NCBI RefSeq assembly: GCF_032191835.1
Contig: NC_083242.1
Location: 38,688,001-38,752,000, forward strand
DNA: 64,000 nucleotides
From: Heteronotia binoei
Lineage: Eukaryota
Direction of reading: 5' to 3'
Shown here: piece after piece, positions 18,205-64,000 of the stretch
Layout: the number at the start of each line of letters is the position of its first letter
Position numbering within the stretch: the stretch's first letter is position 1
Program-made: the position numbers and the translations under genes
The notes under the pieces: model-generated
The model's database searches: none
The model's input: the letters and a program-made list of their open reading frames with translations, nothing else
What the model was told of the DNA's origin: nothing

Positions 18205-18870
18205 AACATAAGAGAAGCTGTGCTGGATCGAGCCAATGACCCATCCGTTCCAACACTCTGGGTCACACAGTGGCAAAAAACCCCAGGTCCATCAGTTGGG
18301 CCAGGACACTAGAAGCCCCCCCAAGCACCAAGGATACAGAGCATCACTGCCCCAGACACAAGAACATAAGAGAAGCCATGTTGGATGTGGCCAATGGCCC
18401 ATCCAGTCCAGCACTCTGTGTCACACAGTGGCCAAAAAAACAGGCGCCGTCAGGAGGTCCACCAAGGGGCCAGGACACTAGAAGCCCCCCCAAGCACCAA
18501 GGATACAGAGCATCACTGCCCCAGACATAAGAACATAAGAGAAGCCATGCTGGATGTGGCCAATGGCCCATCCAGTCCAGCACTCTGTGTCACACAGTGG
18601 CCAAAAAAAACAGGTGCCATCAGGAGGTCCACCAGGGGGCCAGGACACTAGAAGCCCCCCCAAGCACCAAGGATACAGAGCATCACTGCCCCAGACATAA
18701 GAACATAAGAGAAGCCATGCTGGATGTGGCCAATGGCCCATCCAGTCCAGCACTCTGTGTCACACAGTGGCCAAAAAAAAACAGGTGCCATCAGGAGGTC
18801 CACCAGGGGGCCAGGACACTAGAAGCCCCCCCAAGCACCAAGGATACAGAGCATCACTGCCCCAGGCAGA
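18205..18870 (-). repeat. About 4 tandem copies of a ~170-bp CR1 3' UTR/terminus unit
   Basis: cataagaacataagagaagccatg..gcatcactgccccag recurs at about 170-bp spacing (repeated ORFs end at 18583 and 18753). Confidence 0.88.
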
Positions 18871-34800: not shown

Positions 34801-37800
34801 AATTCTTGGAGAACAGGTGAGATGCCCGATGACTGGATGCGAGCAAATGCCTGCATCTTCAAGAAGGGAAATGCTGGTTGCCACTTTGGGGTCAGGCAGC
34901 AATTTTTCTCCAGGCCAGTTTGGCAAGGGGGTCCTGGAGGGTTTTTTTGGTTATCTTCTGGGTGTGGAGTAGGTGTCACTGGGGATGTGCATGGAGGGGG
35001 GTAGGCACTTGTGAGTTTCCTGCATTGTGCAGAGGGTTGGCTAGATGACCCTAGAAATCCCTTCCAGTTCTATGATTCCATGGTCCATCAGAACTCCTCC
35101 TGGGGACTTAGCTAAAAGAAGTATGTGTGTGCTGCTGGGCTGCCACAGCTAGCCCAGGAGTGGGATGTGTGTGCAGACACTCCTCTCAGGGCTTGGGGCT
35201 TGTCCAGAGATGCCTTGGTGGACACCCCCCCTTCCCCCCCGGTGATCTCTCAGGCCTGTTTCTTCTCAGGATTGGCTAATTTCTTTGCCTGCTTCTGCCT
35301 CTCCCTCCCTCCCTCCCTTCCAGTGGGAAAGCCAGCCTGCTCTCCAAAAGGAACCCCAAGAAGCTGGAGGTGGGGAAGAGCGAGGGGGGGCCCAGCTACG
35401 ACATGCCAGGCTCTCCGGAGGATGTGGAGAAAAACCAGAAGATCATGCAGTGGATCATCGAAGGCGAGAAGGAGATCAGCCGACACAAGAAGACGACTCA
35501 TGGGTAAGGAGGGGGCGCAGGGGCCAGGCGCAGCTGGGGGGTGGGGGAGGGAGGCTTCCCAGCTGCCTGGGGGCGGGGGCTGCCTTGCTCCGCCTCCTCC
35601 CGTCTCCACCCCATGGAGCTCAGCACCTTCCTGTGTCTCACTTGGCCACTTTGTTTATGTAGCCAATTTGGGTTGCCTCCCCCTCGCAAACCTGCTCCAG
35701 ACAGGTTACAAAATCAAAACAGAACGTTAATTGTCATTAATTAAAATCCAGCTGGAGAAGCCAGAATTAGAGGGAGGGGGCTGTTTAGAAGCGGAAAGCA
35801 CCCTCAGTGACCCCTTAGTGAAGAGCCTGGGTGAAGAGAGGGGGCTCCGGGGCAGAAGGCCCCCGATTCAATCCGGCTGGAGGCAATGGGAAAGACCCTT
35901 CTCTGCCTGAGACCCGCGCAGCCCCTGCCAGGTGATTCGAGTCAGCCCAGGAGAGCCCCGTTGTGGCCTGGTGGCCAGAAGAGGTGTCCACTGGGAGAGC
36001 CAGGACTTTGCGGGTGGGCCCTGGGCAGGAAGCTCCCCTTTCGACTTGGGCCTGGGCTTCTGCCCTCACGCGGGGAGACGAGCTTTCGGGTGTTTGAGAT
36101 GCTCTTGCGGTTCCCCTTCAGGTCTTCGGGGGCCAAGAAGCCTCTGGTGCATGAGGTGTCCCGCCCCATCTCCATGGAGCGCCCCCTGGCCGTTCACCCC
36201 TGGGTCAGCACCCAGCTGCGGACCGTCGTGCAGCCCTCGCACCCCTTCATCCAGGACCCCACCATGCCCCCCAACCCGGCTCCCAACCCGCTGACCCAGC
36301 TGGAGGAGGCGCGCCGGCGGCTGGAAGAGGAGGAGAAGCGGGCCGGAAAGGCGGCCGCCAAACAGCGGTAAAGGAGGGGAGCGGGCGGGGGGGGCAGGCT
36401 GCTTGCTGGGGCTGACGGGGTCTGGTCTTCCTCCCCGAGCAGCCTTGTGGGGAAATCAGCCGGGTGGGGTGGGTGTCTCTGGGCTCTCTGCCGTCAGGAC
36501 CAGCAGGGCCATTTGCAGGTTTCTGGGAGCAAAGGGAGGTCAGGCGCTCCTGCCTGGTGGGCTGCAAGGGAGGAGCGGGGCCAAGTGTCGGATCCCTCGA
36601 GAGGAAGCAGCAGGGAGCGTCCCCACCTCACTTGGTGGGTGGGCCCTTTGTCTTCTGTGTGGCAGCTGCGCGGTGAGACCTTGGGCAGAAAGGAAGAGTC
36701 CTTTCCCCGCCAGATAGATGGGACTGCTGTGGCCAGCTGCTGCTTGGTACCGGTGGCCCACAGCCCAGGGCAGCAGAAGGCCCGGCAGGGCTCCCGAGGC
36801 CCCACGGACTGCTGTGCTGCTCATGAGCATGGCAGGCAGGCAGGCAGGCAGGCAGGCGGCCTCCGTTCAGTCCCCGCGGGGGCAGGAGGCAGCTTTGGGT
36901 GTGGCTCCCTCGGGGCTGCCGGGCTGCAGTGTGTCTTGCTGGCTCCCCCTGTGTGAGGCGTGTGGGCCAAGGAGAGCCCTCCTGGGCAGGGCTGAGCACG
37001 GGAGCTGCTCTGGAGGAGGCCTTGGGCAGAGCGGCGCTTCCAGGAATGGGCCCTGCCCCTCCGTCTTCCCTGCTGAGGCAGGGCAGTTCCTGTGGCTTCC
37101 CCAGGCTTGCGAGGACATGGCAGCCCTCTTGGGCAGCGGCTCCTTCGTGTGGCTGAGGTGCAGCCCGGGTCTGCTGTGGAGGGGGGTGGGAAGTGCCTTG
37201 TGGGGTTCCTTGTCTCTGCCCGAGCACAGCTCCCTCCCTGGGGGAGGCCAGAATCCCTTGCAGCCAGGCCACGGGGGAGGGGGGTGTCACGGTGGATCTC
37301 CGGCCTTGCCTGGCCAGCTGGCAGCGGGAGGCCCCTGAGGAGGAGCCCAGCACGCCTAATGTCTAAGGTTGTTCTTCAGGTACGTGCAAGAGGTTATCCA
37401 GCGTGGGCGCTCCTCTGTCAGGCCGGCTTGTATTCCAGTGCGGAACGTGGTCCCCGCCGTCTCTGACCTGGATCTCTCCGAGGCCGAGTACGTGCCCGCT
37501 CGCTCCCTGTGCCTCCTCTGCCCCTTGTAGCCTGTAGCCTTCCCTCCCACCTTGGCCCGTTGGGGGTCTGGCTCTGGGTCTGCCCGGAAGGGACCTCTGC
37601 CCTCACCAGCCTGCAGCCTGGGCTTTCTCCTCCTGGTGGCCGTCTGCGGCCAGGCCTTGTGCCTTCCCTCTGCTGCAGGAGGCCGGGAGTGTCGTGCAGA
37701 GCAGGGGGCTGGCTGGCTGCATGGTGGGGCGGGTGGGGGCACCTCAGCTCGGCAAGGGGGGGAGGGAGTGGGCGGGCCACCCCACAGGTCAGGCAGCAGA

Positions 37801-40037
37801 GGGGCAGTCAGCTGGGGAGGCCTGGTGCTCATCAGGCTCTTTCCAGTGCCCCCCTGCCCTGCCCTGTCTCTGAGGGGTGGGTCTTGGCCCAGGGCTGAGC
37901 TGAGCTGAGCTCCTCTCTGCCACGGCAGCTGCTGGGGGAGACTGGGACACTCCCTCAGAAGGTTGGGTGGGTGCCTCTTCCTTCTTGGGCCAATACAGGC
38001 TGGCCCTGCTCTCCTGTGCGCAGACTGGAGCCCCAAGATGTTGTCGGCTGAGATGCAGAAGGGCTCGGGCAGGTGGTGGGGAGGGTGTTCTGAAGCATGG
38101 GGGGAGGGGGTATCATCCCTCGACATGTTGCCGCCGCCTCCTTTGTGTGCCTTTGGAAGGGGCTCTGCAGGTTTCCAGGTGTCTAGGGGTGCTGCAAGGG
38201 AGGGCTGCGTCGTGAGGGAACTGGAGCTGCCGGCTGCTGCCGCTGTGGTGCACTGGAGAGAGCGCCTGCCTGCCTGCCTGCTGTCCTCCTCCATCTTGCA
38301 GAGGTCCCATCCCATGACCCCTTCCTTGCCCCCCTGCTGCCACCTGAGCCGGACCCCGCTTTGTGTTTGCCTCCTAGGGTGAAGCCGCTGAAGAGGCCGG
38401 GTGGGGGCGGCTCCTCCTCCTCCTCCTCCTCCCAGCCTTCGGAGAACATCGTGGTGGCCTACTACTTCTGCGGGGAGCCCATTCCCTACCGCACCCTGGT
38501 CAAGGGGCGGGTGGTCACCCTGGGGCACTTCAAGGAGCTCCTCACCAAGAAAGGGAATTACCGGTAAGACCAGCGGCTGGGAGGGGCTGCGGCAAGGCTG
38601 CCCCTGGGGTGGGGTGGGAGCAGCCTTCTCTCTCTTGCCAGGGGTGTCTTGCCTATCAGCCCCCCCCCAGATTTTGAGGTGGGGGGACATCAAAGCGATC
38701 AAATGTGCTCGTAACTTTTGGCTTCCAGGGCAGGGTGAACTTCGTCTTTGCCAGCTGCTCTGCCCAGGCCGTTGCCCCTTTCTTGGGCAGCCTCGGGGCA
38801 GGGCTAGCTTGGCAGGGCTGCCCCAGGGAATTTATTTATTTTTATTTATTTATTTTAGGCCATTGATAGCCGCCGTCTCCCAAGAAGGGCTCAGGGCGGA
38901 TAACAACATTAGAAAGGCAATAGGAATAACAATCAAAATGTGGATAAAATAAAAGGCAATGCAATCATAGACAGTTTTTGATGGTGGCTCAGCTGGAACA
39001 TGTAAGCTGAGGAATCAGTTGGCACATGTTGTACGGACTACAAATCTGTCCTACATTCTAAGAATCAGATACAGCAAAGGCAGTTTAATATCGTGACGGG
39101 GGTGGTGCTACAGCATAGGGCCAGGCAGAATGCCTGGAGAATGCCCAATAGTGTAGGGTACCCGTTGCCTCAACTAAAGGCCTGGCGGAATAGCTCCATT
39201 TTGCAGGCCCTACGGAAAGGTAACAGTACAGTGAGGGCCTGGATCTCGAGGGGGAGCTGATTCCACCAGGCTGGAGCCAAGGCTGAAAAGGCCCTTCGGG
39301 GCAGGGGCAGTCAGCAGGGGGAGATGCCGTCCCCTAGATACACTTGTCCCAGGCTGTATAAGAGCCTTCAAGGTCTGGCTTTCTGGGGCCTCCTTGGGCA
39401 GGGTTAGGGGAGTCTCTTCGGGGAACATTTTTGGGAGGGGGTAGGGGAGGGGCATCAAGTGACCGCCCCCTTTGCCTGCATCGCTCTCCCCTCCCCAGGA
39501 GCCAGAATGTGTTCTCCCAAGTCTCAGTCCGGAGGGGGGTGGGGTCTCACTTGTTTTGCAGAGTATTCCATCTCTTGGTAGGCATGACTGGGCTGCTCGG
39601 AGCTCTTAGTGCTGAAGGCCATGACAGGAAGACTGCCTGCTTTTTGCTTTCTCTTCTCTCTCCTTTGAGGCTCTTTCAAGGGGGGGCGGGTCTGCCTCCT
39701 TGTCTTCGTAGCTCAGGATGGCCATCCCCCGTGCAAGCGTGCTGCCGCCGCCTTGGTCAGTCTGCTGAGGGCCTCCGTGTGTGGAGAGGCAGGGCGGGGG
39801 CTTGGAGCACAGAGCAGAGGCACTCCAGCTCCCTGGACTCCCATGGCTCTCAGTGGGCGCAGTCCTCCCCTTGCCCCTGACACCAGGGCTTTTCCATCTC
39901 TGCCTTGCAGGTATTACTTCAAGAAGGTGAGCGACGAGTTTGACTGCGGGGTGGTGTTTGAGGAGGTACGCGAGGAAGAGGCTGTCTTGCCCATCTTTGA
40001 AGAGAAGATCATTGGGAAGGTGGAGAAGATCGACTAG
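25881..40037 (+). CDS. AXIN1: Axin-1
   Basis: Exons 25881-26740, 30973-31113, 31621-31717, 32310-32447, 32953-33500, 35324-35503, 36122-36367, 37380-37487 (36-aa cassette exon), 38378-38563 and 39911-40037 splice in frame. Motifs: tankyrase site [11 protein letters not shown] domain, GSK3 site [14 protein letters not shown], beta-catenin site [17 protein letters not shown] domain ending GKVEKID*. Confidence 0.97.
27080..27365 (+). mobile_element. CR1 3' UTR fragment followed by a (GGAT/AGAT)n microsatellite
   Basis: Same terminal sequence as other CR1 copies (ggcttctcttatgttcttatg); microsatellite at about 27370-27435. Confidence 0.7.
29719..30795 (+). repeat. Five head-to-tail copies of a ~217-bp tRNA-derived SINE (Squam3-like)
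   Basis: Each unit has an A-box (tggctcagtgg), a B-box (ggttcaatcc) and the body cttgagaccctggagagcc..ctgattcagta. Family name is from recall. Confidence 0.85.
34260..35070 (+). mobile_element. Degenerate CR1 fragments in AXIN1 intron
   Basis: [31 protein letters not shown] in broken frames, followed by a CR1-type 3' UTR. Confidence 0.7.
38825..39365 (-). mobile_element. L2 3' fragment
   Basis: (TTTA)n tail plus gggctcagggcgg and ccctggatctcg..gctgattccacc, resembling the L2 ends at 4.7-5.0 and 7.3-7.7 kb. Confidence 0.6.
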
Positions 40038-42087
40038 CTCAGAGGAGAGAGGCAGGGCACAGCCCCCTCCTGGCCAGCACTTGCCACCCCTTGCCTGTGG
40101 GCCTCAGTCACGGAACAGCTCTCTCCAGCTGACCCCACGGCTCACGACAGCTGCCCCCAAAGGGTGCTCTGGATGGGGGAGGCACCTCACCCCCCCCGGC
40201 CTCCTTGGAGGGGGTGCCCAGGGGCTGGGGGGCGAGCACTTGGCAGCGGTCCCCCTTGGATGCTTTGCACTTGGAGCAGCCATTCCTTGTGGCCCAGGAG
40301 GAGGAAGGTGCCTGCCGGACTGGCTGAGCAGTGCTGGAAGGGGGCTGTGCCAGGGGGCTGCATCTAGCCCAAAGGTCCTGAGCAGAATGTGCTGCTCCCT
40401 GCCACCCCCCTCCCCTGGGGCCTCCCCCATTGGCCTGTCTGTACACAAAGCCAGTCCCCCCGCTGGTTCTCCTGACTGTCTCTCGAGGGCTGCCTGCCCC
40501 CTCCTGCCATCACCGAGTGCCTTGAACTCTGAGCTCCTCCTCTGGGGCAGGGAGAGCCCCCCTCCCCCCCCACAGCTGAGCTGCTCCTGGGGATGTGCCT
40601 GCCTTCCGCGTCGGATGGATTTCCAGCACGTGTTCCCCAGCAGTCACGGGTTTCTCGTTTTCTCTTTATTTTTTTGGAAGGGTTCAATGTAAATATGTAC
40701 ATTTTCTAAGCCAAGCGTCAGTGACCAGCAGCTGGGCTGGCAGCTGGTGACTCCAGGGCTGTTTTTTCACATGCCGACTTGTACAATGGTCTTTGGAAGG
40801 TACTTGGATGAGGAGGATGGAATAAACGATGCTGTTCAAACGGCTGCTGGCTCTCTCTCTCTCTCTCTCTCCTGGCCGGCCCCCAGCTCACCCCCTCCTC
40901 CAGACGCAGGGAAGGAACAGCTGGACCAGATCCAGCTCTCTCCCCCACCCCCTGCCAGGAAACATCTGTTCTGTCTCCCCTTGTGCAGGGCAGCTCGCGC
41001 AGTAAGAGCAGGGACTTCAGTCAGCATGCAGCGCCCAGATAGAAACCCTGCCAGGACATATGCGTAGCCACCAGATAGGCAGGCAGACAGCAGACGGATG
41101 GACGTGCTCTTTGTCAGTGGGTGAGCCCAGGACAGGCTGGTCTCCTCAGCCCTGGCGAGGCCTTGAGCGGGAGGCCTCCGAACAACCCCCAGGTTGTGTT
41201 GCAGAGGCAGGTCACTCTCCACTGGCAAGAGAGGCTGTAGGAAACTCCGGCCAACAAGGGCGCAAGTCAGCCTGCGACACACCATCTTTGCAGCTGGAGG
41301 CAGAGCGCCAGACAATCGGAGGAAAGGTTTTGGCCAGCCCGGGAGGACGATGCCTCCTTCAGGTGGGCTCTCCCTCCCTCCTCACTCCCCAGCCCACCGA
41401 GTTTGACCCTGCCAGCCACAAAGGGCAAAGGTCAGGCTGAGACCCAGCGCACTGCTCCTTGGTGAGGGGCCAGTCCACTCCCCCTTGCACCCCGGAAAGC
41501 ATCTGCCCTCCCAGAACACCTTGAGCGGGTGCACCCCTTGGGACATGGAAGGTGGGGCGGATGCTGGCCCTTCTGCACTGGGTCTCCCTGGAGGGAGCGG
41601 GAGGCAGGCTTGGAAGGTCTGGAGTGGAGAAGAGCCCCACCGAGCTCCTCCCCCACCTTGGATACGGAACCAGAACCTGAGCCGGTTCCACGGAGCCTTG
41701 GAGCTCTGGGCATTGTTTGAATTCCTCAACGGCCCGGCTGGCCTGCGGTGGGGAGGGCAGCAGGATGGGCTTGAGTGGTGAGGGGGGGAGCTGGAGGGGG
41801 CCCCCTTGGGGGGAGGGAGAGCAGGTGCTGCGCTCCAGCTGTGGCCCAGATGCCAGCAGCGCCCTCCGGGGTGGGGGGGCCTGGGAGTCAGCCTGATGTT
41901 CCCTCTCTTGTTCTCGAGCAGAAAGCAAGAGCGCCCCTCTTGAGAGCCAGGTAGGGGCCGTGGGTGGCTTGGGCAAAGGGGGGCAGCAGAGGGTGCTCCA
42001 GGGCCGGTCCTGGCCTCTGGCTGACAAGACCCCTGGGCAGCAGCAGGGGGGAGGCTGGAAGGACTCAGCTGGCTTTGTTGCCTGCAG

Positions 42088-45000
42088 GATGAGGCCAGCC
42101 CGCTGCACGCAGTGGCCAGGAGGGGGCACTATGAGGCCGCCTGTCGCATTCTCTCCCGGGGGACGGAGGCCATCGACAGCCAGGTGGGGGGGCCTTGGAG
42201 GGTGGTCTCCCCCACACTCTGGGTCAACTGGACCCTTCTCCCTCCAGCCCTCCGCAGCTGGCTGGTGCTGGCAGCTTCTCTCTCTGCCCTGCAGGACGCC
42301 AGTGGAAGGAGTCCCCTTTTCTGGGCCACCGAATACCGGCAGGAGAGGCTGGTGGAGCTGCTGCTGGCCCACGGGGCCAACCCAGCGGTGCGGGACAAGG
42401 TGAGGGAGTGGCCGGCTGCCCTCCCCCTGCCAGCAGCAGAGCTTGGCTAAGGGGGTGTGTGGCAGAGGCTGACCCCCTTCTCTGGCCCAGCAGTTCCAAG
42501 CCTGGGGCAACACAGTGAGGAGGGGTGGGGGTGACTGCCTGCCACCTGGGGCTGGCTGGGGGTGAGGCAAGCCCCAGTGGCCGAGCCTGTTGTGGGGCCC
42601 TGCCCCTCATGCACCCAGCCAGCTGCCTGTGGGGGTGGCTCATGGGTGAAGTTGGAGACCGGGCTGGAGCTCCAGTGCTGAGCCCTGGGCTTGGAGTCCC
42701 CCCAGAAAGGGAGGGGGCTCTTCTTTGCTCTGGAGCCAGGAGACCTCTGCCCTGCCCTGCCCCGCTTGGGCGGGGGGAGGAATGCAGGAGTTGCCTTGTC
42801 CCCAAAACAGCCCCCCCCCCCGGGTTTGAGCATTCTCCTCTGAGGTGGCATCACAACCGCCTGGTATTTCAGTGGCAAGAGACCCTCTACTTCGCAGAAG
42901 GTCTCTCTGCCCCCCCCTTTTGTGCCGCCCTGCCAGCGCTTCCCATTTGCCCTCCAGGAAGGGAACCTCTGTCTGCACCGGGCAGCCTTTGGGGGCTGTG
43001 CCGCCATTGCCCACATGTTGCTGGAGGCTGGCTCGGACCCAAACGCGCCAAACGACCAGGGAGACTCCCCTCTGCACCTGGCTGCCCGGGAGAGACACCA
43101 CGAATGCCTTGTGTGAGTGCCACCCCCGCTGTCTTGCTGGGTGGGCCTCGGGCGGAACCCCCTGGGCATCCTTGGGAAGCAGCGCTCCCCACGCCCACCC
43201 CAAGGAGGCCACAGGCTTCTGCTCTCGGAGCACGCCGCGTTGGCCTTGCAGCAGGCAGACCAGGAAAGCAAGACAGAACCCTGGGGCCAACCCAGGCAAG
43301 GGAAGCAACCCTGAGAAACCACAAGAAGGGACCGCCTGTTTCCCGGGTGATATTTCTCACACGGCTGCCGCTGGGCTTCCCTCACTCCTGGGGGGCCCAG
43401 CTCTGCCTCTGTGTCTTGCAGGCTGCTCCTTGCCTATGGGGCTGAGGCCTGCCTGCAGAACAAAGCGGGCCGGACACCCCTGCAGTGGAGTGCCCTTCAG
43501 AGCGCCTCCGCTTCCCCCGCCCTGAGCCAGGCGGAGAGAGTCCTCAGCAGGTGAGGGGGGGCTGGCCCTGCTGTGGGGTGGCCCAGGGGGCCTGCAGGGG
43601 CCCAGCCAAGCTTTGACTGCTCCCTCCCATCCCTCCCCAGAGACATTTCCCGGGGCTTTGAGCAAGTGCCCATTCCCTGCTTCAACGGGGTGGACGACGC
43701 CCCATGTCCCAGCGACTTCCTCTACGTCACGCAAAACATCGTGTCGGAGTCTGTGGCTATCTCCGTGGCAGCTGCTGGCCCAGGCAGGAGTCAGGTCAGA
43801 GCAGGGCTGGCCCCAGGGGGCCGCTGTGGGTGTCCGAGGGGGCTGGCGGGCAGCTTGCAGCTCTGCTCTGAGCCCCCCCCTGCAGCATCCGGCTCTGCAG
43901 CTCTTTCCTTCGCGGGCTTGCCAAGGAGGGGGGGAAGAGCGCCCATCCCTTCCAGCCCCCCACTGAGCGGAAGCAAGAGGCCTCAGCCCAGAGGGAGCCA
44001 AGCAGCCGGTACCCCAAAGGCTTGGAGTCCCATGGAAGAAAGGCAGCCTCGTGCTTTCTGGAGGGCTGGGGGATGTGCCGTGGTCCCCACTGCCCGCTGG
44101 GCGGGAGGTCCGGATGGGCTGGCGCGGTGAAGTGGTCCTCCTGGGGCTGCCCTGCAGCTGAACTGGGTGGGCTCTGTAGAGCTGAGTTGGCAACTGTTGA
44201 TCTGAGGAGACTTTGAGGGAGATCCTATTGTGGGAACCGGGTGGAACTGAGCCCACAGCCGCCCGTCTCTGGCTCTGCAGAATGCCAAGAGGCGGGGCTT
44301 GCAATGTGTGGAGGGGGTGGGGGGGAGTGGCAGACAGCCTCACTGTGGGCTAGAGGCCCCCTCCCTCTCAAAAGGTGACCCTCCGGCCTTTGCTTGCAGC
44401 ACTGCTCCTGCCCCCCCGGAGGCTGCTCCCCCGCCAGCTGCCCTTGTGTCTCGCGCGGCAGGCGGCCCTGGGACACAAGGAGGGTAAGAATGGCAGGCTG
44501 GGCATGGTGGCCGGGGGCTGGGGCACCAGGCAGGCTCTCCTCCCTTCCTCTTGTGTTCCAGGATGGCCAACTCCTCCGGCAGGGTGCCAGCAGCTCCTCC
44601 TCCTCCCCCTCGGAGATGGGCCTCCTCTTTGAATGCAACGTGCTCTGCTCGTGTGCCAGCTCCTGCTCCAACCGGGTGGTGCAGAGGGGCACCAGGTGAT
44701 GAGGGCAGCTTCTCCTGCTGCCTCCCTTCCTTGCAGGGGTCAGCCTAGCCCCTTGCCTGGGCTCCTCGCTTGCAGGCACCACCACGCCCCGCCCCCCAGC
44801 GGGCCGGCTCTGCAGAGCTGCCAAGAGGAGGGGGGACCCGCACCCCTTTGGACTCGATGCTTCCCAGGCTACAGTGTTCTCTCTTTGGGGCAGGGTTCAG
44901 CTGCAGCTCTTCCGGACGCCAGCCAAGGGCTGGGGCGTGCGCACTGCACAGGATGTCCCCCGTGGAGCCTTTCTGTGCCAGTGAGTTGGGGGTGGGGGGG

Positions 45001-45869
45001 AGGTCCTCTTTGGGGGCCCTTCGAGAGCACGAGGCCCAGCCAGCTCCCCCTCCCCTCTTTGCCAGGTACTTTGGGGAGCTGATTTCCAGCACAGAGGCCG
45101 CGGGGCGCAGCCTGGAGAATGCCTACTACTTCGCCCTGGTGAGACTGCTGCTGCCCCCCCCGCCCCCCGCCCAGCACAAGGGGTCTAGGCTCAGCCCCAC
45201 TGCTGCCATCGTGCCCCCTCTCTTGCAGGACGGCCAGGAGCGCTGCCTTGATGGGCGCTTCTATGGCAACATTGGCCGCTTCCTGAACCACTCCTGCCGG
45301 CCCAACCTGGAGGCTGTGCAGGTGTCAGCGGGGCCCGAGGGCCCTGGCATCGCCTTCTTCAGCACCCGGCCCATCCGCGCCGGAGAGGAGCTGGGGTGAG
45401 CGAGGGGCTCGGCTGGAAGCAGGGGGGGGGGGCGCAGTGCTGGGAAAGGGGCCCGGGGCGGGCCTGCCTTCGATGGAGGGCTCAACTCCTGGGCGGCCTG
45501 TGGGGAAAGTAGAGGCAGCCGGTCTGGGGGGTGGGAGGAGCCAGGTGGGCCGCCCCGCCCCCTCCGCTGCTCCAACCGGGCTTCTCCCCCCGCCCCCCCG
45601 CCCCTTGCAGGTTCGACTACGGGGACAAGTTCTGGGAAGTGAAGGCGGGCGAAGGCTGCCGCTGCCTGTGCGGGGCTCCCGCGTGCCGCTACCGCCAGGA
45701 GGCCGCTTGCCCGGCGGCGTCGGGGGCTGCTGCGGGCGACGTGGCGTCGGGGCCGGGCGTCGGGGCCGGGCGCCCCCCGCTGCGAGGCTTCGCGCTCAAG
45801 TCCAAGCGCAGGACCCCCCTGCAAGGCCCCGCGCGCTCCCGCCGAGCCCCGCCCCTCGCCGAGCAATAA
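42088..45869 (+). CDS. EHMT1/EHMT2 (GLP/G9a)-like histone-lysine N-methyltransferase: ankyrin repeats, pre-SET, SET, post-SET; 5' end uncertain
   Basis: Exons 42088-42183, 42295-42399, 42958-43112, 43422-43550, 43641-43794, 44400-44483, 44562-44695, 44894-44980, 45066-45138, 45229-45395 and 45611-45869 are all AG/GT with matching phases and sum to 1443 nt. Motifs: [100 protein letters not shown]. Confidence 0.9.
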
Positions 45870-46037
45870 AGTTGGTGCTTCCCACGAGCTGCCGCGCCGC
45901 TGGTTCTTGCAAGCTGGAGGGCGACCGCAGGGGGGGGGGAGGGGGAAGCCCCGCCCCTCGGCCGAAGCCCCGCCCCTCGGGAGTCGCTGCCCGGCCGGAG
46001 AAGAGGCGCGGAGCGGAGGCAGCCCGAGGCGAGCTCC

Positions 46038-49000
46038 ATGACGGTGCTGGGCGCGCTCCGCTCGGCCGGCGGCCCCCGGCTGCAGCTGCCCTGCCTGGCC
46101 AAGGTGGGGGGGGGCGGGGGGAGAGCGGGGGGAGGGGGCGGGGGGGGCGTCTGGCGGGGCCTGACCTTGTCTCCCCCCTGCCGGTGCTGGCGCTGGTGCA
46201 GCTGGAGCGCGCCGTGCTGGCCATGCAGGACCCGGACATGGGCGTCAAGCTGCGGCACCAGCGGCTCCTCATCAGCGCCATCCCGCACGCCATGACCGGT
46301 GAGCCCCGCCGCGGGACGGGGGGGGGGGGGAGGGGAGGGGGCCCCTCCCTCCCCCCCCCTTCTCACCGCCCGGGGGCGCCGCTGCTCTTCTCCCCGCAGG
46401 CAGCGACGTGGTGGAGTGGCTGGGCCAGAAGTACGGCGTGGCCGAGGAGGGTCAGTGGGGGGGGATGGGGGGCGGGAGGGGGGCTGCGGGCGGGGAGGGG
46501 CGGGTGTGGCAGGGGCTGCCTCTCTCTCTCTCTCTCTCCCTCCCTCTGGCTGCAGAGGCCTTGCACCTGGGCCAGCTGCTGGTGAAGCACGGCTACGTCT
46601 ACCCGCTGAAGGACCCCTGCAGCCTGGCCTTGCGGGCCGATGAGACGCCCTACAGGTTCCAGGTAGGCCTCGCCCCGCACACACTCGCTTAACGGAACAG
46701 CCACGCAGAATAAACGCCAGAGGTTGGAGAGCCGCAGCACATGAATGGCAGGTGTGGGAGGGAGCGAGTGGAAAGAAAGCAACTTTAAATGCCTTGGCTC
46801 CAAGCCAGTGGCTGTGACGCTTCAAGAACCACACAAGATGTGAGGAAGAGGCAGTTTGGCTGGCCCTGTGCCCCACTGGCCCTCTTTCCCCCCTCCAGAC
46901 GCCGTATTTCTGGATGAGCACCAAGTGGCCCCCCACGGAGCTGGACTATGGTGAGTGCTGTGCGGGGGGCGGGGAAGGAAAGCTCTCCATGCATCTCCTC
47001 AAGGACCAACTCTCCCCCCTTCCTGTCGCAGCAATCTACCTGGCGAAGAAGAATATCCGCAAGCAAGGGGACCTTCTGGACCACGAAAAGGCAAGCGGGT
47101 GGCCACCTCATCTCACCCCTCCCCCTCCCCGCGTGTGGGACCCTGGCTCAGTCTGCCTGCTGCTCTCCCCCCCCCCCCAGGAAGACTACAGCCAGCTGCA
47201 CAAGAGGATCAACCACGCGTGGGACTTTGTGGTCATGCAGGCCCGAGAGCAGCTGCGGTGAGCCCACCTGGGCGGCCAGCCAGGATTCAGGGCAGGTGCG
47301 GGGGGGGGGGAAGAGGCCCTGATGCTTCCTTCCTCCCCCCCCCCCCACCAGGGCAGCCAAGCAGCGCCGGAGAGGGGACCGCATTGTCATCGAGTACCAG
47401 GAGCAAGCCTACTGGCTGGTGAACAGACCTCTGGTAGGTGGGGGGGGGGCTTGCAATCCCCCCCCCCGCCCTGCTTTCCTCACTGCTGAGCCAGGCAGCG
47501 AACTCCCGAGATCCTTGGGCAGACTGGCCGGGGGGCAGGTGGGGTCCCTGCTCAGCTCTGTCGTGTTTCCCTGCAGCCGGGGTCGTCGGATGTGATGGAA
47601 CTGGGGCCGGAAGGAAGGACCCGACACGGTGCCAGGGTGAGCTGGGGAGGGGGCTGTGGAAGGCCTGATTCAGCCCTGGCTCCCCAGCTGCTGGGCTGTG
47701 TGTGCCCCTCCTGGGCTGCTGGCTGGCTGGAGACCACTCCGTGGTAGGACTAGTCCTCCCCTCCCCTTCCCTCCTCTCCCAGCCTTTTCTGTGCCCCTCC
47801 CTCCCTCCCTCCGCTGCTCCTGAAGAGCACAAGGCTGGCTTGGAGCTGGGCATTTCCTTCCTTCATTCTGCCAGCCCATGCCCCCCCCCCCTCTGGCTGG
47901 TGCCAAGGCTGGAAGTCCCAGCGCCCCTCTGGACTCAGCTTGCTTCCTCCTGCAGCTTCCCTGGCCACGCCTTCCCACTGACCCCTGGGCTCTCAATACA
48001 CCCCCCTGGCGGCTGGGGTGGGAGTCTTCTTCCTTGCCGGAGGGGGCGGGCCTTCAGGGGCTCTTTTGGCCTTTGCTCTCTTCCAGGCGAAGAATGCCGA
48101 CTATTACAAGCAGGAGGTGAGTGTGGGTGGGTGGGGCCACGTCTGGGCCAGTGGGGAGGGGGCAACTGCCGCCTGCTGTCTGGCCCAAGTGCCCCCCAGC
48201 CCCTTTCTCTTGGGTGCAGATCCGCATCTGTTGCGCAGCCATGGGCCGGACCCGGCTCAAGTCTTCCATCTGCTTGGAAGGGTGAGTAAGTCTCCTGGGG
48301 CAGGTTGGCTCCTCACCCGCATGGCCTGCAGCCTCCTCTCTGGCCCAGAGGCCAAAGGGTACCTTTCCCAGGCTGGCTGCATCTGCAAGGGCCCTGCGGG
48401 GAAGGGAAGCCAGGAAGGAGGCAGGCAGCCTCCTGGGTCTCTCTGCCACCCGGCCTTCCCCAGAGGAGGTGGGCTGTTCGGCAAGCAGACCCACCATCCC
48501 TTTGTGCCCTGCCTCTCGGAGGGCAAATGCCCCCTTCCCTGGCCTCTGCCCGTCTCTGCAGGTACATCAAGTTCAACGACCAGTACATGCCCCACGACCC
48601 CATCATGTCCGGCTGCCTGCCCAGCAACCCCTGGATCACAGACGACACCACCTACTGGGCCATGAATGCCGCCGCGTGAGTGGCAGGCTCGGGGGTCTCT
48701 TGCTGGGAGTGCAGACTCTTTGGGGGGAGGGGGCTCCTGCCTCATGGGCCTGACCCTTTCTCCCCTTGCCTGCCTGCAGGGTCTCTGTGCCCACCAAGCT
48801 GCGGGTCGAGCGCTGGAGTTTCAGCTTCCAAGAACTGCTGAATGACCGCCTGGGCCGGGCACAGCTCTTGGAGTTCCTCCAGAAAGAGTTCAGTGGTGAG
48901 TGGACCCTGCAGAGGCCGAGAGGAGCAGAGCTCCCCAAATGGGGGAGGGGAGAGGGAGCCAAGCTCAGTCCAGACCACTCCCTGCCTGTCCTTCCACCCC

Positions 49001-49755
49001 CTGTAGCTGAGAACCTGAGCTTCTGGGAGGCGTGTGAGGCCCTGCGCCACGGGGAGCAGGCATGCATTGCAGAGATGGTGGATTCCATTTACCAGTAAGT
49101 GGCTTCACAGTGGTGGATCTTGGGGAGGGGAAGGGCAGTGGCTCTTTCCCTGCTGGACTTGGAGGTCTTGGTGGGGGGAGGACCTCCGTTCCTTTGCTGG
49201 CCCCCGCAGCCCTCTTCCTGCCCTGCCCTCCCCCTGCAGGCAGTTCCTGGCCCCCAGTGCCGTCCGCTGGGTCAACATTGACAGCAGGACCATGGAGCGC
49301 ACTTTGCAGGGCATCAAGAGCCCCCACCGCCACGTGATGGACGATGCTCAAATGCACATCTACATGCTCATGAAAAAGGTGCCAGGGCTGGGAGGGCTGG
49401 GGGGGGGGGGTTCCTGAGCAGGAAAGAGGTCGCTGCTGGACTTTGATTGACCCCCCCCGCCAGGACTCCTACCCCCGCTTCCTCAAGTCGGAGGCCTACA
49501 AGAACCTGCTGGCGGAGGCCCTGATCCCCCCGGAGACCAAGAAGCGGTGAGTGAGCCAAGAGTGTGGGAGAGGGGGCTGTGGAGAGGAGAAGAGGGGTGC
49601 AGCCTAAGCCCCCCCTTCCTTCTCCCTTGGCCAGAGTCTTCCCCTTCATGCGGAAGCCCCGCCACTCCAGCCCCAGCCCGGCTCTGCCCCCTTCTGGGGA
49701 CGGCGGTGTTGTTGGCGAGAGGAGCAAAGTGGGACTGGAGCCTTTGCTGATGTGA
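46038..49755 (+). CDS. RGS11: Regulator of G-protein signaling 11 (R7 family: DEP, DHEX, GGL, RGS)
   Basis: 17 exons: 46038-46103, 46202-46298, 46400-46450, 46556-46662, 46899-46950, 47032-47090, 47181-47257, 47352-47433, 47577-47636, 48087-48116, 48220-48281, 48562-48675, 48780-48895, 49007-49094, 49240-49378, 49464-49546, 49635-49755. Motifs [55 protein letters not shown]11 rather than RGS9 by short C-tail and synteny with AXIN1/FAM234A. AATAAA at 49945. Confidence 0.93.
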
Positions 49756-52066: not shown

Positions 52067-55000
52067 TCACCGAGGGCTGCGGTATCTCATCCGGAGGAAG
52101 CGGTCCCGGACATGCTGTCCTGTGTCCTGAGCCGCCTGGCTCAGCCAGATCACGTGGCTGTTGGCCATATCATCCTTCAGCCTCTGCTTGGACAGCACCA
52201 CCACGCCAGGACTGCCGCTGGCCTCAGGTCCCGTCAGCAGCACGTAGCAGGCATGGCGGCTCCGCTCAAAGAGCACCGCTGGAATCCAGAGCAAAGGGGG
52301 TCAGTGTCGACACTCCCCAGGGCGGGGGGGGGAGCAAGGGGGGCGGGCACACTTACCCTGGAAGGCCACAATGGCCTCAGTGCTGTTGTTCATCCACAGC
52401 AGCACACTGGGGAAGGAGGGGTGGAACAGGTAGAGGTTCTGGGGGACCCCTTCTGAGCCCTGGAGAAAGAGAGAGAGTAGAGTTTGAGAAGCCTTTGGCC
52501 CCCCAAGCAGTGTCCAAGGCCAGAGCAGAACCAATTCTCTTCCCCTCCCCCCACCCCCCAAGGCTTTGGGGTTTCACTTGCCTGTACAGAAGTCTCATCT
52601 AGATGTTCATTTTTAATCTGGCCTTAACCATACATGTTCACTGCAATAATTTTTATGTCATTATACTTTTAAAGAAATAGTCCTTAGCGTTCTTTGTGTG
52701 TATATCTACACAGAGAGGGAGAGGAGGGGGGATACCTAAAAACCTCTAAGCCACAGTGCAGTCGAGGCAGGAAGAATGCTGAAGGACCCCCCATCCCCAA
52801 CAAAAGCAGCTGGAAGGACCCCTGGGCCCATGGCCTGTGGGAGGCTTGGTGAGAGCCCTGGCAGGACCAGGAGGCAGGCTGAGCCACTCACCGTTCTGTT
52901 CCTGCCTGGCTGGTAGTCGCCCCAGAAGAGGAAGAAGGACCTGTGATCGGCCGTGAGCAGCGTGGCTGGGCTGGGGGTCCCCACTCCCGAGAGAAAGTCC
53001 ATCTCCCACTTGATGTTTCCAGAACTGCCCTCCACCACTAGAACCTGTGAAGCAGAAGGAGCATCTGAGGCAGGCCTCACTGGGACCTCATGGCTGTTCC
53101 AGCCTGACACTAGAAAGGGGGAGAGGCCCCCGGGATCTGTGTCACAGACAAGAGGCAGAGAGAAGCGCACTGGCCCAAACCCAGCAGCTGCTCCACAAAC
53201 CTTTTTGTTGGGTGCAACTCTGCTTTCAACTACAATATCAACCTCATCAGAAGTGAAGGATCCAAACACTGGCTCACTGCAAGAGGGACACAAGAAGAGG
53301 ATACATGTTTGGGGACAGACTCCTCACGGGCTAAGAGAACAGATTCAAAAACCGCTGAAATGGCAGGAAGCAGAGAGTAGGGCTCAATGGGCGGTTCTCC
53401 CAATGCAGGGGGGTCCCACAAGGGTCAGCATTGGGGCTGGTACATCTGGAAGTGTGGGGGGGCGAGCAGGGGCGTGGCCAGATCTGCAGCTGGTCCAGGA
53501 TTATTCAGGATGGTGAAAACAAAGGCAGGCGGTAAAGAGCTGCAGCGCAGGAGGATTTGGATAGGGGGGGCGACAAAGGGAGGTCAGTGTTGATGAGCAT
53601 AAGGGGAGGCGCACTGGGGCAAAGAACTCCCAACTTCAGCTATAGGCTGCCGGAGACTGAGAGGGGAAAAGATCTTGGGGTTGAAGCGTCAACTCAGAGT
53701 GAAGCAGCCAATATTGCAATGCTCCTGTACAAATCTATGGAGCAGCCTCATCTGGAACACAGTTCTGGTTCCCGTATCTCAAAAAGGGGCAGAGGAGGGC
53801 AACCAAGACCACGAAGAGGCTGAAGTGCTTCCCTCTGAGGAAGAGCCTGGCAGGACTTCCCCCTTTAGAAAAGAGACAACTGGGGGACAGAAGAACATCA
53901 GGGAAGTCATGTTGGATCAGGCCAGTGGCCCCTCCAGTCCAACACTCTGTGTCACATAAGAACATAAGAGAAGCCCTGTTGGATCAGGCCAGTGGCCCCT
54001 CCAGTCCAACACTCTGTGTCACATAAGAACATAAGAGAAGCCCTGTTGGATCAGGCCAACGGCCCCTCCAGTCCAACACTCTGTGTCACATAAGAACATA
54101 AGAGAAGCCATGTTGGATCAGGCCAGTGGCCCATCCAGTTCAACACTCTGTGTCACATAAGTACATAAGAGAAGCCATGTTGGATCAGGCCAGTGGCCCA
54201 TCCCGTCCAAAACTCTGTGTCACAGAAGAACATCAGAGAAGCCATGTTGGATCAGGCCAGTGGCCCATCCAGTCCAACACTCTGTGTCACATAAGAGAAG
54301 CCATGTTGGATCAGGCCAGTGGCCCCTCCAGTCCAACACTGTCACAGAAGAACATCAGAGAAGCCATGTTGGATCAGGCCAGTGGCCCATCCAGTCCAAC
54401 ACTCTGTGTCACATAAGAGAAGCCATGTTGGATCAGGCCAGTGGCCCATCCAGTCCAACACTCTGTGTCACATAAGAGAAGCCATGTTGGATCAGGCCAG
54501 TGGCCCCTCCAGTCCAACACTCTGTGTCACATAAGTACATAAGAGAAGCCATGTTGGATCAGGCCAGTGGCCCCTCCAGTCCAACACTCTGTGTCACAGA
54601 AGAACATCAGAGAAGCCATGTTGGATCAGGCCAGTGGCCCATCCCGTCCAAAACTCTGTGTCACAGAAGAACATCAGAGAAGCCATGTTGGATCAGGCCA
54701 GTGGCCCATCCAGTCCAACACTCTGTGTCACATAAGAGAAGCCATGTTGGATCAGGCCAGTGGCCCCTCCAGTCCAACACTGTCACAGAAGAACATCAGA
54801 GAAGCCATGTTGGATCAGGCCAGTGGCCCATCCAGTCCAACACTCTGTGTCACATAAGAGAAGCCATGTTGGATCAGGCCAGTGGCCCATCCAGTCCAAC
54901 ACTCTGTGTCACATAAGAGAAGCCATGTTGGATCAGGCCAGTGGCCCATCCAGTCCAACACTCTGTGTCACATAAGAGAAGCCATGTTGGATCAGGCCAG

Positions 55001-63595: not shown

Positions 63596-64000
63596 TGGCA
63601 GAGGTTGTCCTTGAAAGGGCAGCTGCTGTGAGAGCCCTCTCCAGCCCCACCCACCTCACAGGGTGTCTGTTGTGGGGGAGGAAGGAAAAGGAGATTGTGA
63701 GTCGCTCTGAGACTCTTCGGAGTGGAGGGCGGGATATAAATCCAATATCTTCATCTACCTCACAGGGTGTCTGTTGTGTGGGAGGAAGGTAAAGGAGATT
63801 GTGAGCCACTCTGAGATTCTTCTCTCCCCCTGCCCCCGCTGTTTACTCTGGGCTGCGGAACAGCGAGGCTCAGGGTGCTGCCGCCATGCATTAAGTCCAT
63901 CTTAGATGCAAGAATTAATCTAGTTCAGCTGCGGTGAACCTTCTCATTGTTCCACTGCCTCATGGGGGGGGGGGGGCAAGAGACAGGAGCGCCAGCCCAG

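Follow-up and report, generated by a model that had tools for sequence, protein, structure and literature searches.

G9a (EHMT2) and GLP (EHMT1) are treated as a fixed vertebrate pair, and the coupling of reading to writing is a textbook model for the maintenance of H3K9 methylation. A 64,000-nt window of the Heteronotia binoei genome (the whole stretch of DNA that was analyzed) contains a shortened EHMT-type gene, which raises the question of whether the locus is a third member of this family, from which gene it was derived, and whether its product could still act as a methyltransferase. This gene and its squamate relatives are referred to here as the short form, and collectively as the short clade. 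Our analysis indicates that the H. binoei locus is probably an intact gene under purifying selection, a truncated, squamate-only duplicate of EHMT1 that has kept its introns, and that its product would be an active methyltransferase with changed targeting.

Gene structure and domain content

An earlier note on this DNA had proposed 11 exons (42088-45869) that encode an uninterrupted protein of 480 amino acids. Every acceptor in this set is AG and every donor is GT, and splicing joins the exons into one 1443-nt open frame that encodes 480 aa and ends with a TAA stop codon at 45867-45869. The exon borders and the frame were therefore confirmed, but the model is incomplete at its 5' end because it begins at an acceptor and contains no ATG. 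Two additional coding exons upstream became apparent when the locus was compared with that of Gekko kuhli. The full product is 494 amino acids, encoded by 13 coding exons with GT-AG introns (Table 1), and begins with MGLSESK.

Coding exon 1, ATGGGCTTGAGTG followed by gt, is the same in the annotated start of the G. kuhli ortholog (L037:10001-10013), and its ATG is flanked by A (-3) and G (+4). Coding exon 2 matches 10 of the 11 Paroedura residues AESKSTPLESQ, and its G. kuhli homolog (10353-10381) is likewise 29 nt long; together, the two new exons encode MGLSESKSAPLESQ. Coding exon 3 is 81% identical at the amino acid level to a homologous open exon of G. kuhli. The 13-exon splicing, the choice of start codon, and transcription of the gene are predicted from conservation only. 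An ATG at 41896 was considered as a frameshifted start codon and rejected, since the G. kuhli locus places an intact start exon further upstream. A tandem acceptor (gAG/cAG, 41917-41921) is located before coding exon 2.

Table 1. Coding exons and associated features of the H. binoei short form, in positions of the window.
Feature	Position	Strand	Content
Coding exon 1 (new)	41765..41777	+	ATG GGC TTG AGT G, M-G-L-S plus one base; donor GTGAGG
Coding exon 2 (new)	41922..41950	+	29 nt; donor GT at 41951
Coding exon 3 (first of the 11 exons proposed earlier)	42088..42183	+	First kept ankyrin repeat, aa 15-46; AG/GT; Pfam Ank
Coding exon 4	42295..42399	+	Ankyrin repeat, aa 47-81; carries Arg51 at the first cage-Trp site
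Coding exon 5	42958..43112	+	Ankyrin repeats, aa 82-133; CLHRAA with Arg89
Coding exon 6	43422..43550	+	Final ankyrin repeat and linker, aa 133-176
Coding exon 7	43641..43794	+	EHMT-specific N-terminal pre-SET part, aa 176-227; Pfam Pre-SET
Coding exon 8	44400..44483	+	Pre-SET cysteines 1-5, aa 228-255
Coding exon 9	44562..44695	+	Last four pre-SET cysteines, aa 256-300
Coding exon 10	44894..44980	+	SET start, KGWGV, aa 300-329
Coding exon 11	45066..45138	+	Substrate-groove segment, aa 329-353 (from alignment)
Coding exon 12	45229..45395	+	SET core, aa 354-409; Pfam SET, E=4.8e-13
Coding exon 13	45611..45869	+	aa 409-494 and TAA; FDY (catalytic Tyr), post-SET, tail motif
Clade-specific tail motif	45777-45818	+	Within coding exon 13
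Candidate AATAAA polyadenylation-type hexamer	45866..45871	+	Overlaps the stop codon; read from sequence

Exon-by-exon Pfam scans, which detected Ank on four exons, Pre-SET on two, and SET (E=4.8e-13), together with reading of the motifs, bore out the proposed order of ankyrin repeats, pre-SET, SET, and post-SET. The ankyrin repeats are positioned directly upstream of the pre-SET region and correspond in alignments to the final four to five repeats of EHMT1 and EHMT2. Each of the motifs that had been listed from the window was found: all nine pre-SET cysteines (C-x-C-x4-C-x4-C-x-C and C-x3-C-x-C-x3-C), GWG within KGWGV, RFLNHSC, FDY within ELGFDY, and the post-SET C-x-C-x4-C. The cofactor and catalytic motifs also include QYFGE and AYYF, and the pre-SET and post-SET cysteines are conserved across the short clade. 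The solved structures closest to the SET-core exon are human EHMT1 and then EHMT2 (E about 5e-14), with SUV39H2 and SETMAR behind. Of the features that define the EHMT subfamily, the short form has the pre-SET/SET/post-SET arrangement, the upstream ankyrin repeats, the phylogenetic placement, and the catalytic residues; it does not have an intact methyl-lysine cage, the N-terminal Cys-rich region, or the acidic substrate groove.

Copy number, exon boundaries, and neighbors

Whole-genome searches with exon-encoded proteins identified exactly three EHMT-type loci in H. binoei. Canonical EHMT1 and EHMT2 are both present elsewhere in the genome, and the short form is not the sole copy. The locus on contig C5 is EHMT2, with a SET-core exon that is 57/58 identical to human EHMT2, and the locus on contig C12 is EHMT1, which groups with bird and salamander EHMT1. 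A genome-wide search with coding exon 7 matched these two EHMT loci only. A whole-genome search for Pfam Pre-SET returned three loci, none of them EHMT genes, because the coding sequence of EHMT genes is divided among small exons. The short form is 48% identical to the EHMT1 of its own genome over the shared region and 41% identical to its EHMT2 (G9a, KMT1C), with which it has the domain order and catalytic motifs in common.

The edges of tblastn matches within the H. binoei EHMT1 and EHMT2 loci coincide with short-form exon edges for 9 of the 11 exons initially proposed. Coding exon 3 generated only weak, ankyrin-level matches in the two loci. A short Cys-rich exon generated no significant tblastn match, and was located in the EHMT1 locus by a motif search between the correct neighboring exons. 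Because the short form shares its exon boundaries with EHMT1 and EHMT2, it is a DNA-level duplicate and not a retrocopy, as the earlier note had argued from EHMT1 intron positions. Given these matching boundaries and the presence of canonical EHMT1 and EHMT2 in the same genome, we conclude that it is a true third paralog.

The H. binoei gene is flanked by AXIN1 (or PDIA2) and an RGS11-type gene, which are not the neighbors of EHMT1 or EHMT2, in agreement with the unrelated surroundings claimed in the earlier note. The AXIN1/PDIA2-RGS11 block holds the gene in all five species checked, comprising two gekkonids (H. binoei and Gekko kuhli), one snake (Pituophis), one lacertid (Podarcis), and one cordylid (Hemicordylus). 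The H. binoei locus is subtelomeric and GC-rich, and lies 178 kb from the contig end.

Distribution, origin, and selection

At least 15 squamate species, including geckos, skinks, lacertids, iguanians, a monitor, and snakes, have relatives of the H. binoei gene. Identities to the H. binoei protein are 73% for Paroedura picta, 70% for Eublepharis macularius, and 60% for both Podarcis lilfordi and Pituophis catenifer; further short-form models are from Hemicordylus, Tiliqua, Rhineura, Sceloporus, and Anolis sagrei. Database searches returned no copy from outside the squamates. The earlier proposal of an uncharacterized paralog absent from the human locus thus stands with respect to a third paralog, and is refined to one that is apparently restricted to squamates. 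Every major squamate group has intact relatives, and therefore this third EHMT member has apparently been retained since the common ancestor of living squamates.

Most of the squamate relatives, which are uncharacterized predictions, have been named "EHMT1-like" by automated annotation, as had been anticipated, and some "EHMT2-like". We found no mention of a squamate short-form EHMT gene in the literature searched. The dozens of "EHMT1-like" entries represent a single coherent, unnamed gene family and not annotation noise. In several of the models the N-terminus is incorrect or absent, or exons are skipped (the Gekko kuhli model omits a conserved exon, L037:10588-10683), and several need correction of their 5' exons.

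Phylogenetic analysis with EHMT1 and EHMT2 placed the short form inside vertebrate EHMT. In the best tree, the short clade (100/100) is located within EHMT1 (100/98) and within tetrapod EHMT1 (95/86), and branching inside the clade broadly tracks the squamate groups. In an AU test, grouping of the short clade with EHMT2 was disfavored (p=0.03). On the best tree, the short clade is derived from EHMT1, with the depth of the branch point less sure. An older paralog that arose before the tetrapod-teleost or the EHMT1/EHMT2 split and was lost in every other vertebrate lineage is, in our judgment, quite improbable. Such an origin would be compatible with the very long stem of the short clade (0.94 changes per site), which makes its placement unsure, and with AU tests that do not reject a position outside all canonical EHMT1 (p=0.11) or outside EHMT1 and EHMT2 together (p=0.14). 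It is, however, at odds with the nesting in tetrapod EHMT1 and with the seven columns that are diagnostic of EHMT1 versus EHMT2, where the short clade has the EHMT1 state in three, the EHMT2 state in none, and neither in four. The next-best database matches after squamates are canonical EHMT1, the searches yielded squamate copies only, and the AXIN1-RGS11 block is not known to belong to the MHC paralogy group containing EHMT1 and EHMT2. A whole-genome-duplication paralog in an MHC-paralogous block was likewise disfavored because of the AXIN1/RGS11 neighbors and the nesting within EHMT1 in the best tree, although the AU tests do not reject it.

Purifying selection, which had been suggested by the intact frame and splice sites, is evident from dN/dS values relative to Gekko kuhli of 0.18 (ML) and 0.34 (NG86, bootstrap 0.26-0.43), well below 1. 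The SET domain gave values of 0.10-0.22 and the tail higher ones of 0.29-0.70. The gene nevertheless evolves fast: gekkonid orthologs are just 71-77% identical, and tree branch lengths indicate a rate very roughly ten times that of EHMT1. GC3 of the short form is 0.81, and Gly, Ala, Arg, and Pro account for 39% of its residues, compared with 22% in canonical EHMTs; part of the divergence could stem from GC-biased fixation and relaxed constraint. The long branches and skewed composition, the subtelomeric, GC-rich location near the contig end, and the incompleteness of some ortholog models (Anolis sagrei without the first pre-SET cysteines and Lerista without the tail motif look eroded) would also be expected of a decaying or non-functional duplicate, either an unexpressed pseudogene or a product of drift under GC-biased conversion, in which the open frame persists as a remnant. 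We regard decay as highly improbable in view of the 13 exons with an open frame and canonical splice sites, the intact relatives across all major squamate groups, and an upper bootstrap bound on omega of 0.43. Moreover, 13 positions that are invariant in canonical EHMT1 and EHMT2 carry another residue that is itself conserved within the short clade, and the start and tail motifs are conserved.

Substitutions in the methyl-lysine cage and substrate groove, and conserved terminal motifs

The cage on the GLP ankyrin repeats that binds H3K9me1/2 is formed by Trp839, Trp844, Trp877, and Glu847 (PMC2794343). The equivalent of Trp839 is arginine in 16/16 short forms (Arg51 in H. binoei). The equivalent of Trp877, the third cage tryptophan, is Arg89 in H. 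binoei; arginine is present at this site only in H. binoei, Pituophis, Sceloporus, and Anolis, and the remaining short forms retain tryptophan. The H. binoei short form retains the equivalents of Trp844 and Glu847. The cage would thus lack its first tryptophan in every species, and a second one in H. binoei.

In G9a, Asp1074, 1078, 1083, and 1088 form an acidic groove that recognizes H3 Arg8-Lys9 (PMC7948220). When residue numbers are assigned by the spacing between the positions given in that paper, and not from a numbered human sequence, these sites are Ser, Ala, Asn, and Ala in H. binoei, and Leu1086 is replaced by Tyr. In the short clade as a whole, the one aspartate that usually remains is the Asp1083 equivalent, and the other three sites are non-acidic in most members; most of the aspartates that hold Arg8 and Lys9 would therefore be missing. 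Three residues of the canonical HQDLRFPR loop in SET are deleted in the H. binoei protein. Only 14 residues are located ahead of its ankyrin repeats, and Pfam PF21533 (Cys-rich) appears in the precomputed lists for canonical EHMT matches but for no short form, consistent with loss of an N-terminal half that would have comprised the Cys-rich region together with roughly half of the ankyrin repeats. Because cage tryptophans and groove aspartates have been lost, the short form probably does not read H3K9me or favor substrates with Arg-Lys.

The short clade has a conserved N-myristoylation-type start, Met-Gly-x-x-x-Ser-Lys/Arg. Each of the 11 N-termini checked fits PROSITE PS00008, a permissive pattern (G-{EDRKHPFYW}-x(2)-[STAGCN]-{P}), at Gly2; two of these are internal Met-Gly sequences of longer, predicted models. 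Such a start would favor placement at membranes or in the cytoplasm. The conserved tail, PLRGFA-x-K-S/T-x-R, has a core (G-F-A-[L/F]-K-[S/T]) that resembles the A-R-K-S of H3 with another residue in place of the arginine, and could serve as a site of automethylation or as a pseudosubstrate. An AlphaFold2 model of the Eublepharis ortholog, built from a 22-sequence alignment (mean pLDDT 62.7; about 90 for the ankyrin repeats, 50-76 for SET, and under 40 for the tail), is too weak to judge docking of the tail in the substrate groove.

EHMT1 (GLP, KMT1D) is the best counterpart of the short form as judged by the ankyrin and pre-SET/SET/post-SET domains, exon boundaries, several diagnostic residues, tree neighbor, and structure match. 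At 494 aa compared with about 1,290 aa (salamander EHMT1 cluster representative), the short form differs from EHMT1 in having no Cys-rich region and only four to five ankyrin repeats left, arginine at the Trp839 site, a groove with its aspartates largely lost, and the SET-loop deletion. It adds the MGxxxS[K/R] start and the PLRGFAxK[S/T]xR tail.

From these sequence features, the short form is likely to be an active lysine methyltransferase with new targeting, in which SAM-dependent catalysis would be retained and the choice of targets altered. It may instead be an isoform-like paralog that acts on chromatin as an ordinary H3K9 mono- and dimethyltransferase with tissue-restricted expression (e.g., in the germline), perhaps pairing through its SET domain with EHMT1 or EHMT2, whose start and tail motifs have no special role. 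Retention of the catalytic core, zinc clusters, and EHMT-specific pre-SET segment, the closeness to the EHMT1 and EHMT2 structures, and the presence of Asp1083 and of two cage tryptophans out of three in most short forms are consistent with such an enzyme. We nonetheless consider it unlikely, given the uniform replacement of the first cage tryptophan by arginine, the non-acidic residues at the Asp1074, 1078, and 1088 sites in most short forms (roles from PMC7948220), and a Gly2 myristoylation-type start that occurs across four squamate infraorders and would be odd for a chromatin enzyme. A more specific version of the retargeting that we favor, which we put forward tentatively and hold to be doubtful, is that squamates have a lipid-anchored, EHMT1-derived methyltransferase that acts off chromatin. 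The N-myristoyl start would place the enzyme at membranes or in the cytoplasm, a groove rebuilt with hydrophobic residues in place of its aspartates would select non-histone proteins in which the target lysine is preceded by a hydrophobic residue, and the tail G-F-A-L-K-S would serve either as a switch set by automethylation or as a pseudosubstrate. On the retargeting reading, the writer appears to have been kept, the reader and the groove for Arg8 to have been taken apart, and a start of the lipid-anchor type to have been added; the short form would constitute a natural experiment in histone methyltransferase retargeting that is testable by standard assays.

Extra copies of EHMT1 are also known from other lineages. 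The bird Colius striatus has lineage-specific, EHMT1-like duplicates that consist of SET only, and Basiliscus vittatus has a Y-linked copy of canonical EHMT1 known as EHMT1Y (PMC8622242). The Colius copies differ from the short form in that they keep the canonical CEYVGE, YLFDLD, and RCWY and have no loop deletion, and in the best tree they are located outside the short clade (100/100). Neither the Colius copies nor EHMT1Y carry the derived features of the short clade.

A third EHMT locus in the Heteronotia genome

On the forward strand, a 1443-nt open frame encoding 480 aa is formed by splicing together 11 segments, all of which have a GT donor and an AG acceptor with a pyrimidine tract. The earlier note had described the splice borders and uninterrupted frame of this protein accurately, and its finding is real and its interpretation largely right, but its model begins at an acceptor, without a start codon, and lacks two small upstream exons. 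The N-terminus of the Paroedura orthologue aligns to window positions 41918-41950 (AESKSAPLESQ, then GT). The annotated start at the Gekko kuhli locus is ATGGGCTTGAGTG followed by GTGAGT, and the same 13 bases followed by GTGAGG are present in the window, where the start codon has A at -3 and G at +4. A tandem (NAGNAG-type) acceptor (gAG/cAG, 41917-41921) precedes the second coding exon; use of its upstream AG would add one alanine (MGLSAESK), and the start would then no longer match the myristoylation pattern. Because the Gekko kuhli and Paroedura comparison supplies both the start exon and the 29-nt exon, the completed model of the gene, here called short EHMT, has 13 coding exons and a predicted product of 494 aa that starts MGLSESKSAPLESQ.

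In Pfam searches with single exons, four exons matched ankyrin repeats and two matched Pre-SET, and SET was detected at E=4.8e-13. Among solved structures, the SET-core exon matched human EHMT1 and then EHMT2 (E ~5e-14), ahead of SUV39H2 and SETMAR. The nine pre-SET cysteines, the cofactor and catalytic motifs, and the post-SET C-x-C-x4-C that had been listed from the sequence are all found in the product.

The window corresponds to C20:38688001-38752000 of the 2.63-Gb assembly and lies 178 kb from the contig end. Whole-genome searches with the SET-core exon and the EHMT-specific pre-SET exon located exactly three EHMT-type loci: the window and one locus each on contigs C12 and C5. The C5 exon is identical to human EHMT2 at 57 of 58 positions. 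The C12 exon scores nearly equally against human EHMT1 and human EHMT2, and its locus groups with bird and salamander EHMT1 in the phylogenetic tree. True EHMT1 (C12) and EHMT2 (C5) genes are thus present elsewhere, a check that the earlier note had proposed, and the window gene is a true third paralogue. When the spliced product was compared with the C12 and C5 loci by tblastn, the match ends coincided with window exon boundaries for nine of the 11 exons. Exon 1 of the 11-exon model gave weak ankyrin-level matches only. The short Cys-rich exon was not matched significantly by tblastn; a motif search then located it in the C12 locus, between the correct neighbouring exons. The coinciding boundaries therefore identify short EHMT as a DNA-level duplicate and not a retrocopy, as had been claimed. 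Two other pre-SET/SET loci in the genome (G000) are not EHMT genes: C13:15013022-15013315 (L001) and C5:68599235-68599798 (L002/L007). The C5 locus consists of one long exon with 36% identity to short EHMT across pre-SET and SET, and it resembles SETMAR.

Gene order and neighbouring sequence

Features of the window (window positions)
Feature	Position	Strand	Detail
67-bp unit array	8377-8964		8.8 copies; orientation opposite to 53891-55165
Tandem array	18285-18865		170 bp x 3.4
217-bp unit array	29718-30794		five units in tandem
AXIN1 3' exons	35252-40051	+	last conserved block ends 40051
AXIN1 DIX-domain exon	38364-38564	+	Pfam DIX, E=5e-13
Short EHMT start exon	41765-41777	+	
Short EHMT second small coding exon	41922-41950	+	29 nt in window and in Gekko kuhli
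Short EHMT, 11 further exons	42088-45869	+	stop TAA at 45867-45869
RGS11-type gene, DEP and RGS exons	46039-49701	+	likely ATG at 46039
67-bp unit array	53891-55165		20 copies
Tandem array	55704-56611		134 bp x 6.9
Tandem array	61875-63596		79 bp x 21.8

Short EHMT is flanked upstream by AXIN1, which shares blocks of 80-92% identity with AXIN1 of Gekko kuhli, and downstream by an RGS11-type gene, consistent with the earlier point that EHMT1 and EHMT2 have different neighbours. The likely RGS11-type ATG is 170 bp beyond the short EHMT stop, so the EHMT 3' UTR and the RGS promoter must be very compact or overlapping. Gekko kuhli has the identical gene order. In Pituophis, AXIN1 is followed by a PDI-type gene on the opposite strand, then by short EHMT, the RGS11-type gene and FAM234A; in Podarcis and Hemicordylus the order is PDI-type gene, short EHMT, RGS11-type gene. 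This arrangement matches the human 16p13.3 block FAM234A-RGS11-ARHGDIG-PDIA2-AXIN1, a region with no relation to the surroundings of EHMT1 or EHMT2. Short EHMT occupies one fixed position in both gekkonids, the snake, the lacertid and the cordylid, which argues for a single ancient insertion. No gene was called between AXIN1 and short EHMT in the two gekkonids, where there is little room (window 40051-41765; Gekko kuhli L037:6278-10001; compare L039:2714-8653), and the PDI-type (PDIA2-like) gene may have been lost or moved in geckos.

The window region is satellite-rich, as expected close to a chromosome end. A copy of the 67-bp unit lies upstream of the RGS11-type gene in Gekko kuhli as well (L037:16296-16363), so the unit represents a repeat family common to both species. 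The 217-bp unit has a tRNA-like start (GGTGGCTCAGTGGCAGAGC...GGTTCAATCCCCAGC), and its array looks like a tandemly amplified tRNA-derived SINE.

Distribution, origin and selection

A scan of the SET-core exon against 1.8 billion cluster representatives recovered a 524-aa Lerista protein of the same layout, together with fragments from Salvator, Anolis and other assemblies; an Anolis sagrei short form was obtained by cluster look-up. The Lerista protein and the Paroedura pre-SET-to-C-terminus part were then used as queries against a 5.8-billion-protein collection. With both queries, all matches at least 50% identical to the query were squamate (Paroedura, Eublepharis, Gekko, Sphaerodactylus, Rhineura, Podarcis, Hemicordylus, Tiliqua, Lerista, Sceloporus, Varanus, Pituophis, Protobothrops, Crotalus, Ophiophagus and Ahaetulla), and the next-best matches were canonical EHMT1 fragments at 44-50%. 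The window product shares 73% identity with its Paroedura counterpart, 71% with that of Gekko kuhli and 70% with that of Eublepharis, values that make a gekkonid gecko the most likely source. Most of the squamate relatives are automatically named "EHMT1-like", as the earlier note had guessed. A literature search found no paper on the squamate short EHMT gene; the only reptile EHMT1 item found was a Y-linked copy of canonical EHMT1 in Basiliscus (PMC8622242). Relatives are already modelled in public databases, so the locus is not unknown; as a gene family it is unnamed and, to the extent of our searches, unstudied. Two short-form proteins each are listed for A. sagrei (P0271/P0007), Lerista (P0009/P0006), Tiliqua (P0153/P0154) and Hemicordylus (P0151/P0152); the A. 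sagrei and Lerista pairs are on different contigs and may be second copies. In the 480-aa A. sagrei model the first five pre-SET cysteines are missing, as is the tail motif in the model from Lerista.

In a tree of 46 sequences (466 columns, LG+C20+F+G4), in which the composition of the short forms is deviant, the 16 short forms make up one clade (100/100) with a stem of 0.94 changes per site. This clade is nested in EHMT1 (100/98) and in tetrapod EHMT1 (95/86), apart from teleost EHMT1a/b, and its branching approximates the squamate groups: geckos; skinks plus cordylid; lacertid, amphisbaenian and iguanians; snakes. Canonical EHMT1 has hardly changed: its end branches are 0.044 (lizard C12) and 0.039 (bird), joined by a path of ~0.10, as against 0.35 for the path that joins two gekkonid short forms. 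Two deeper placements of the short clade, one outside all canonical EHMT1 (p=0.11) and one outside both EHMT1 and EHMT2 (p=0.14), were not rejected by AU tests; grouping with EHMT2 was disfavoured (p=0.03). Seven columns strictly distinguish EHMT1 from EHMT2, and in these the short clade has the EHMT1 state three times, the EHMT2 state never and neither state four times. On the best reading of these sequence comparisons, short EHMT arose from EHMT1 on the stem lineage of squamates, at a depth that is not settled.

The Gekko kuhli coding sequence was reassembled exon by exon for dN/dS comparison; every one of its 13 exons, of which the annotation skips one, is open and has AG/GT borders. The two species share 77% amino-acid identity over 474 aligned codons, with dS of 0.4-0.7 depending on method. 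Short EHMT is under purifying selection, as had been proposed, and this selection is looser than expected of a canonical EHMT. GC3 is 0.81, and G, A, R and P make up 39% of residues versus 22% in canonical EHMTs; GC-biased fixation in the subtelomeric region probably adds to the divergence.

dN/dS of short EHMT, window versus Gekko kuhli
Region	ML	NG86
Whole gene	0.18	0.34 (bootstrap 0.26-0.43)
Ankyrin	0.19	0.32
Pre-SET	0.18	0.37
SET and post-SET	0.10	0.22
Tail	0.29	0.70

Derived features and predicted function

An alignment of 15 short forms with canonical proteins, with separate per-column counts, contains 13 columns that are invariant in all canonical EHMT1/2 and bear a different residue conserved in at least 80% of short forms, such as W to R at aa 51 (16/16), E to Q at 329, V to F at 331 and A to G at 362. 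This pattern points to a coherent derived state, not random decay. The zinc clusters, cofactor motifs and catalytic tyrosine are retained, and short EHMT would be an active lysine methyltransferase. Of the ankyrin repeats the last four to five remain, and everything N-terminal of them is lost. The AlphaFold model of the Eublepharis orthologue is confident for the ankyrin part only.

The first tryptophan of the GLP H3K9me1/2 cage is Trp839 (PMC2794343). Its equivalent, mapped like the other human residue numbers by motif spacing and not on a numbered human sequence, is lost in all short-form species, and that of Trp877 is also lost in the Heteronotia genome, Pituophis, Sceloporus and Anolis; short EHMT would not read H3K9me. 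G9a Asp1074, 1078 and 1088 are reported to complement H3 Arg8/Lys9 (PMC7948220). The window product has Ser, Ala and Ala at these sites, Asn at Asp1083 and Tyr at Leu1086, and three residues of the HQDLRFPR loop are deleted in short forms; the preference for an Arg-Lys site is predicted to be gone.

The short forms have also gained motifs at both ends. The start Met-Gly-x-x-x-Ser-Lys/Arg matches the PROSITE myristoylation pattern in 11 of 11 N-termini checked (geckos, skinks, cordylid, lacertids and iguanians; two are internal Met-Gly sites of longer predicted models), and from this motif short EHMT is probably lipid-anchored. Among the 14 short forms with a C-terminus, 12 carry the tail P-L-R-G-F-A-[L/F/H/R]-K-[S/T]-x-R. 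Its core A-L-K-S is similar to A-R-K-S of H3 but has another residue in place of the arginine, a change that parallels the loss of the aspartates that bind arginine. The tail may serve as a site of automethylation or as a pseudosubstrate. To our knowledge, a protein in which the writer is kept, the reader and groove are dismantled, the start is of lipid-anchor type and the tail resembles a histone has not been described.

The mousebird Colius striatus has several EHMT1-like copies on at least four contigs (P0046, P0178, P0184, P0093, P0311, P0312, P0053) that comprise pre-SET and SET alone with canonical motifs retained. These look like an independent bird-lineage expansion of EHMT1 fragments; one copy is annotated as a fusion with a fas-binding-factor-1 homologue.
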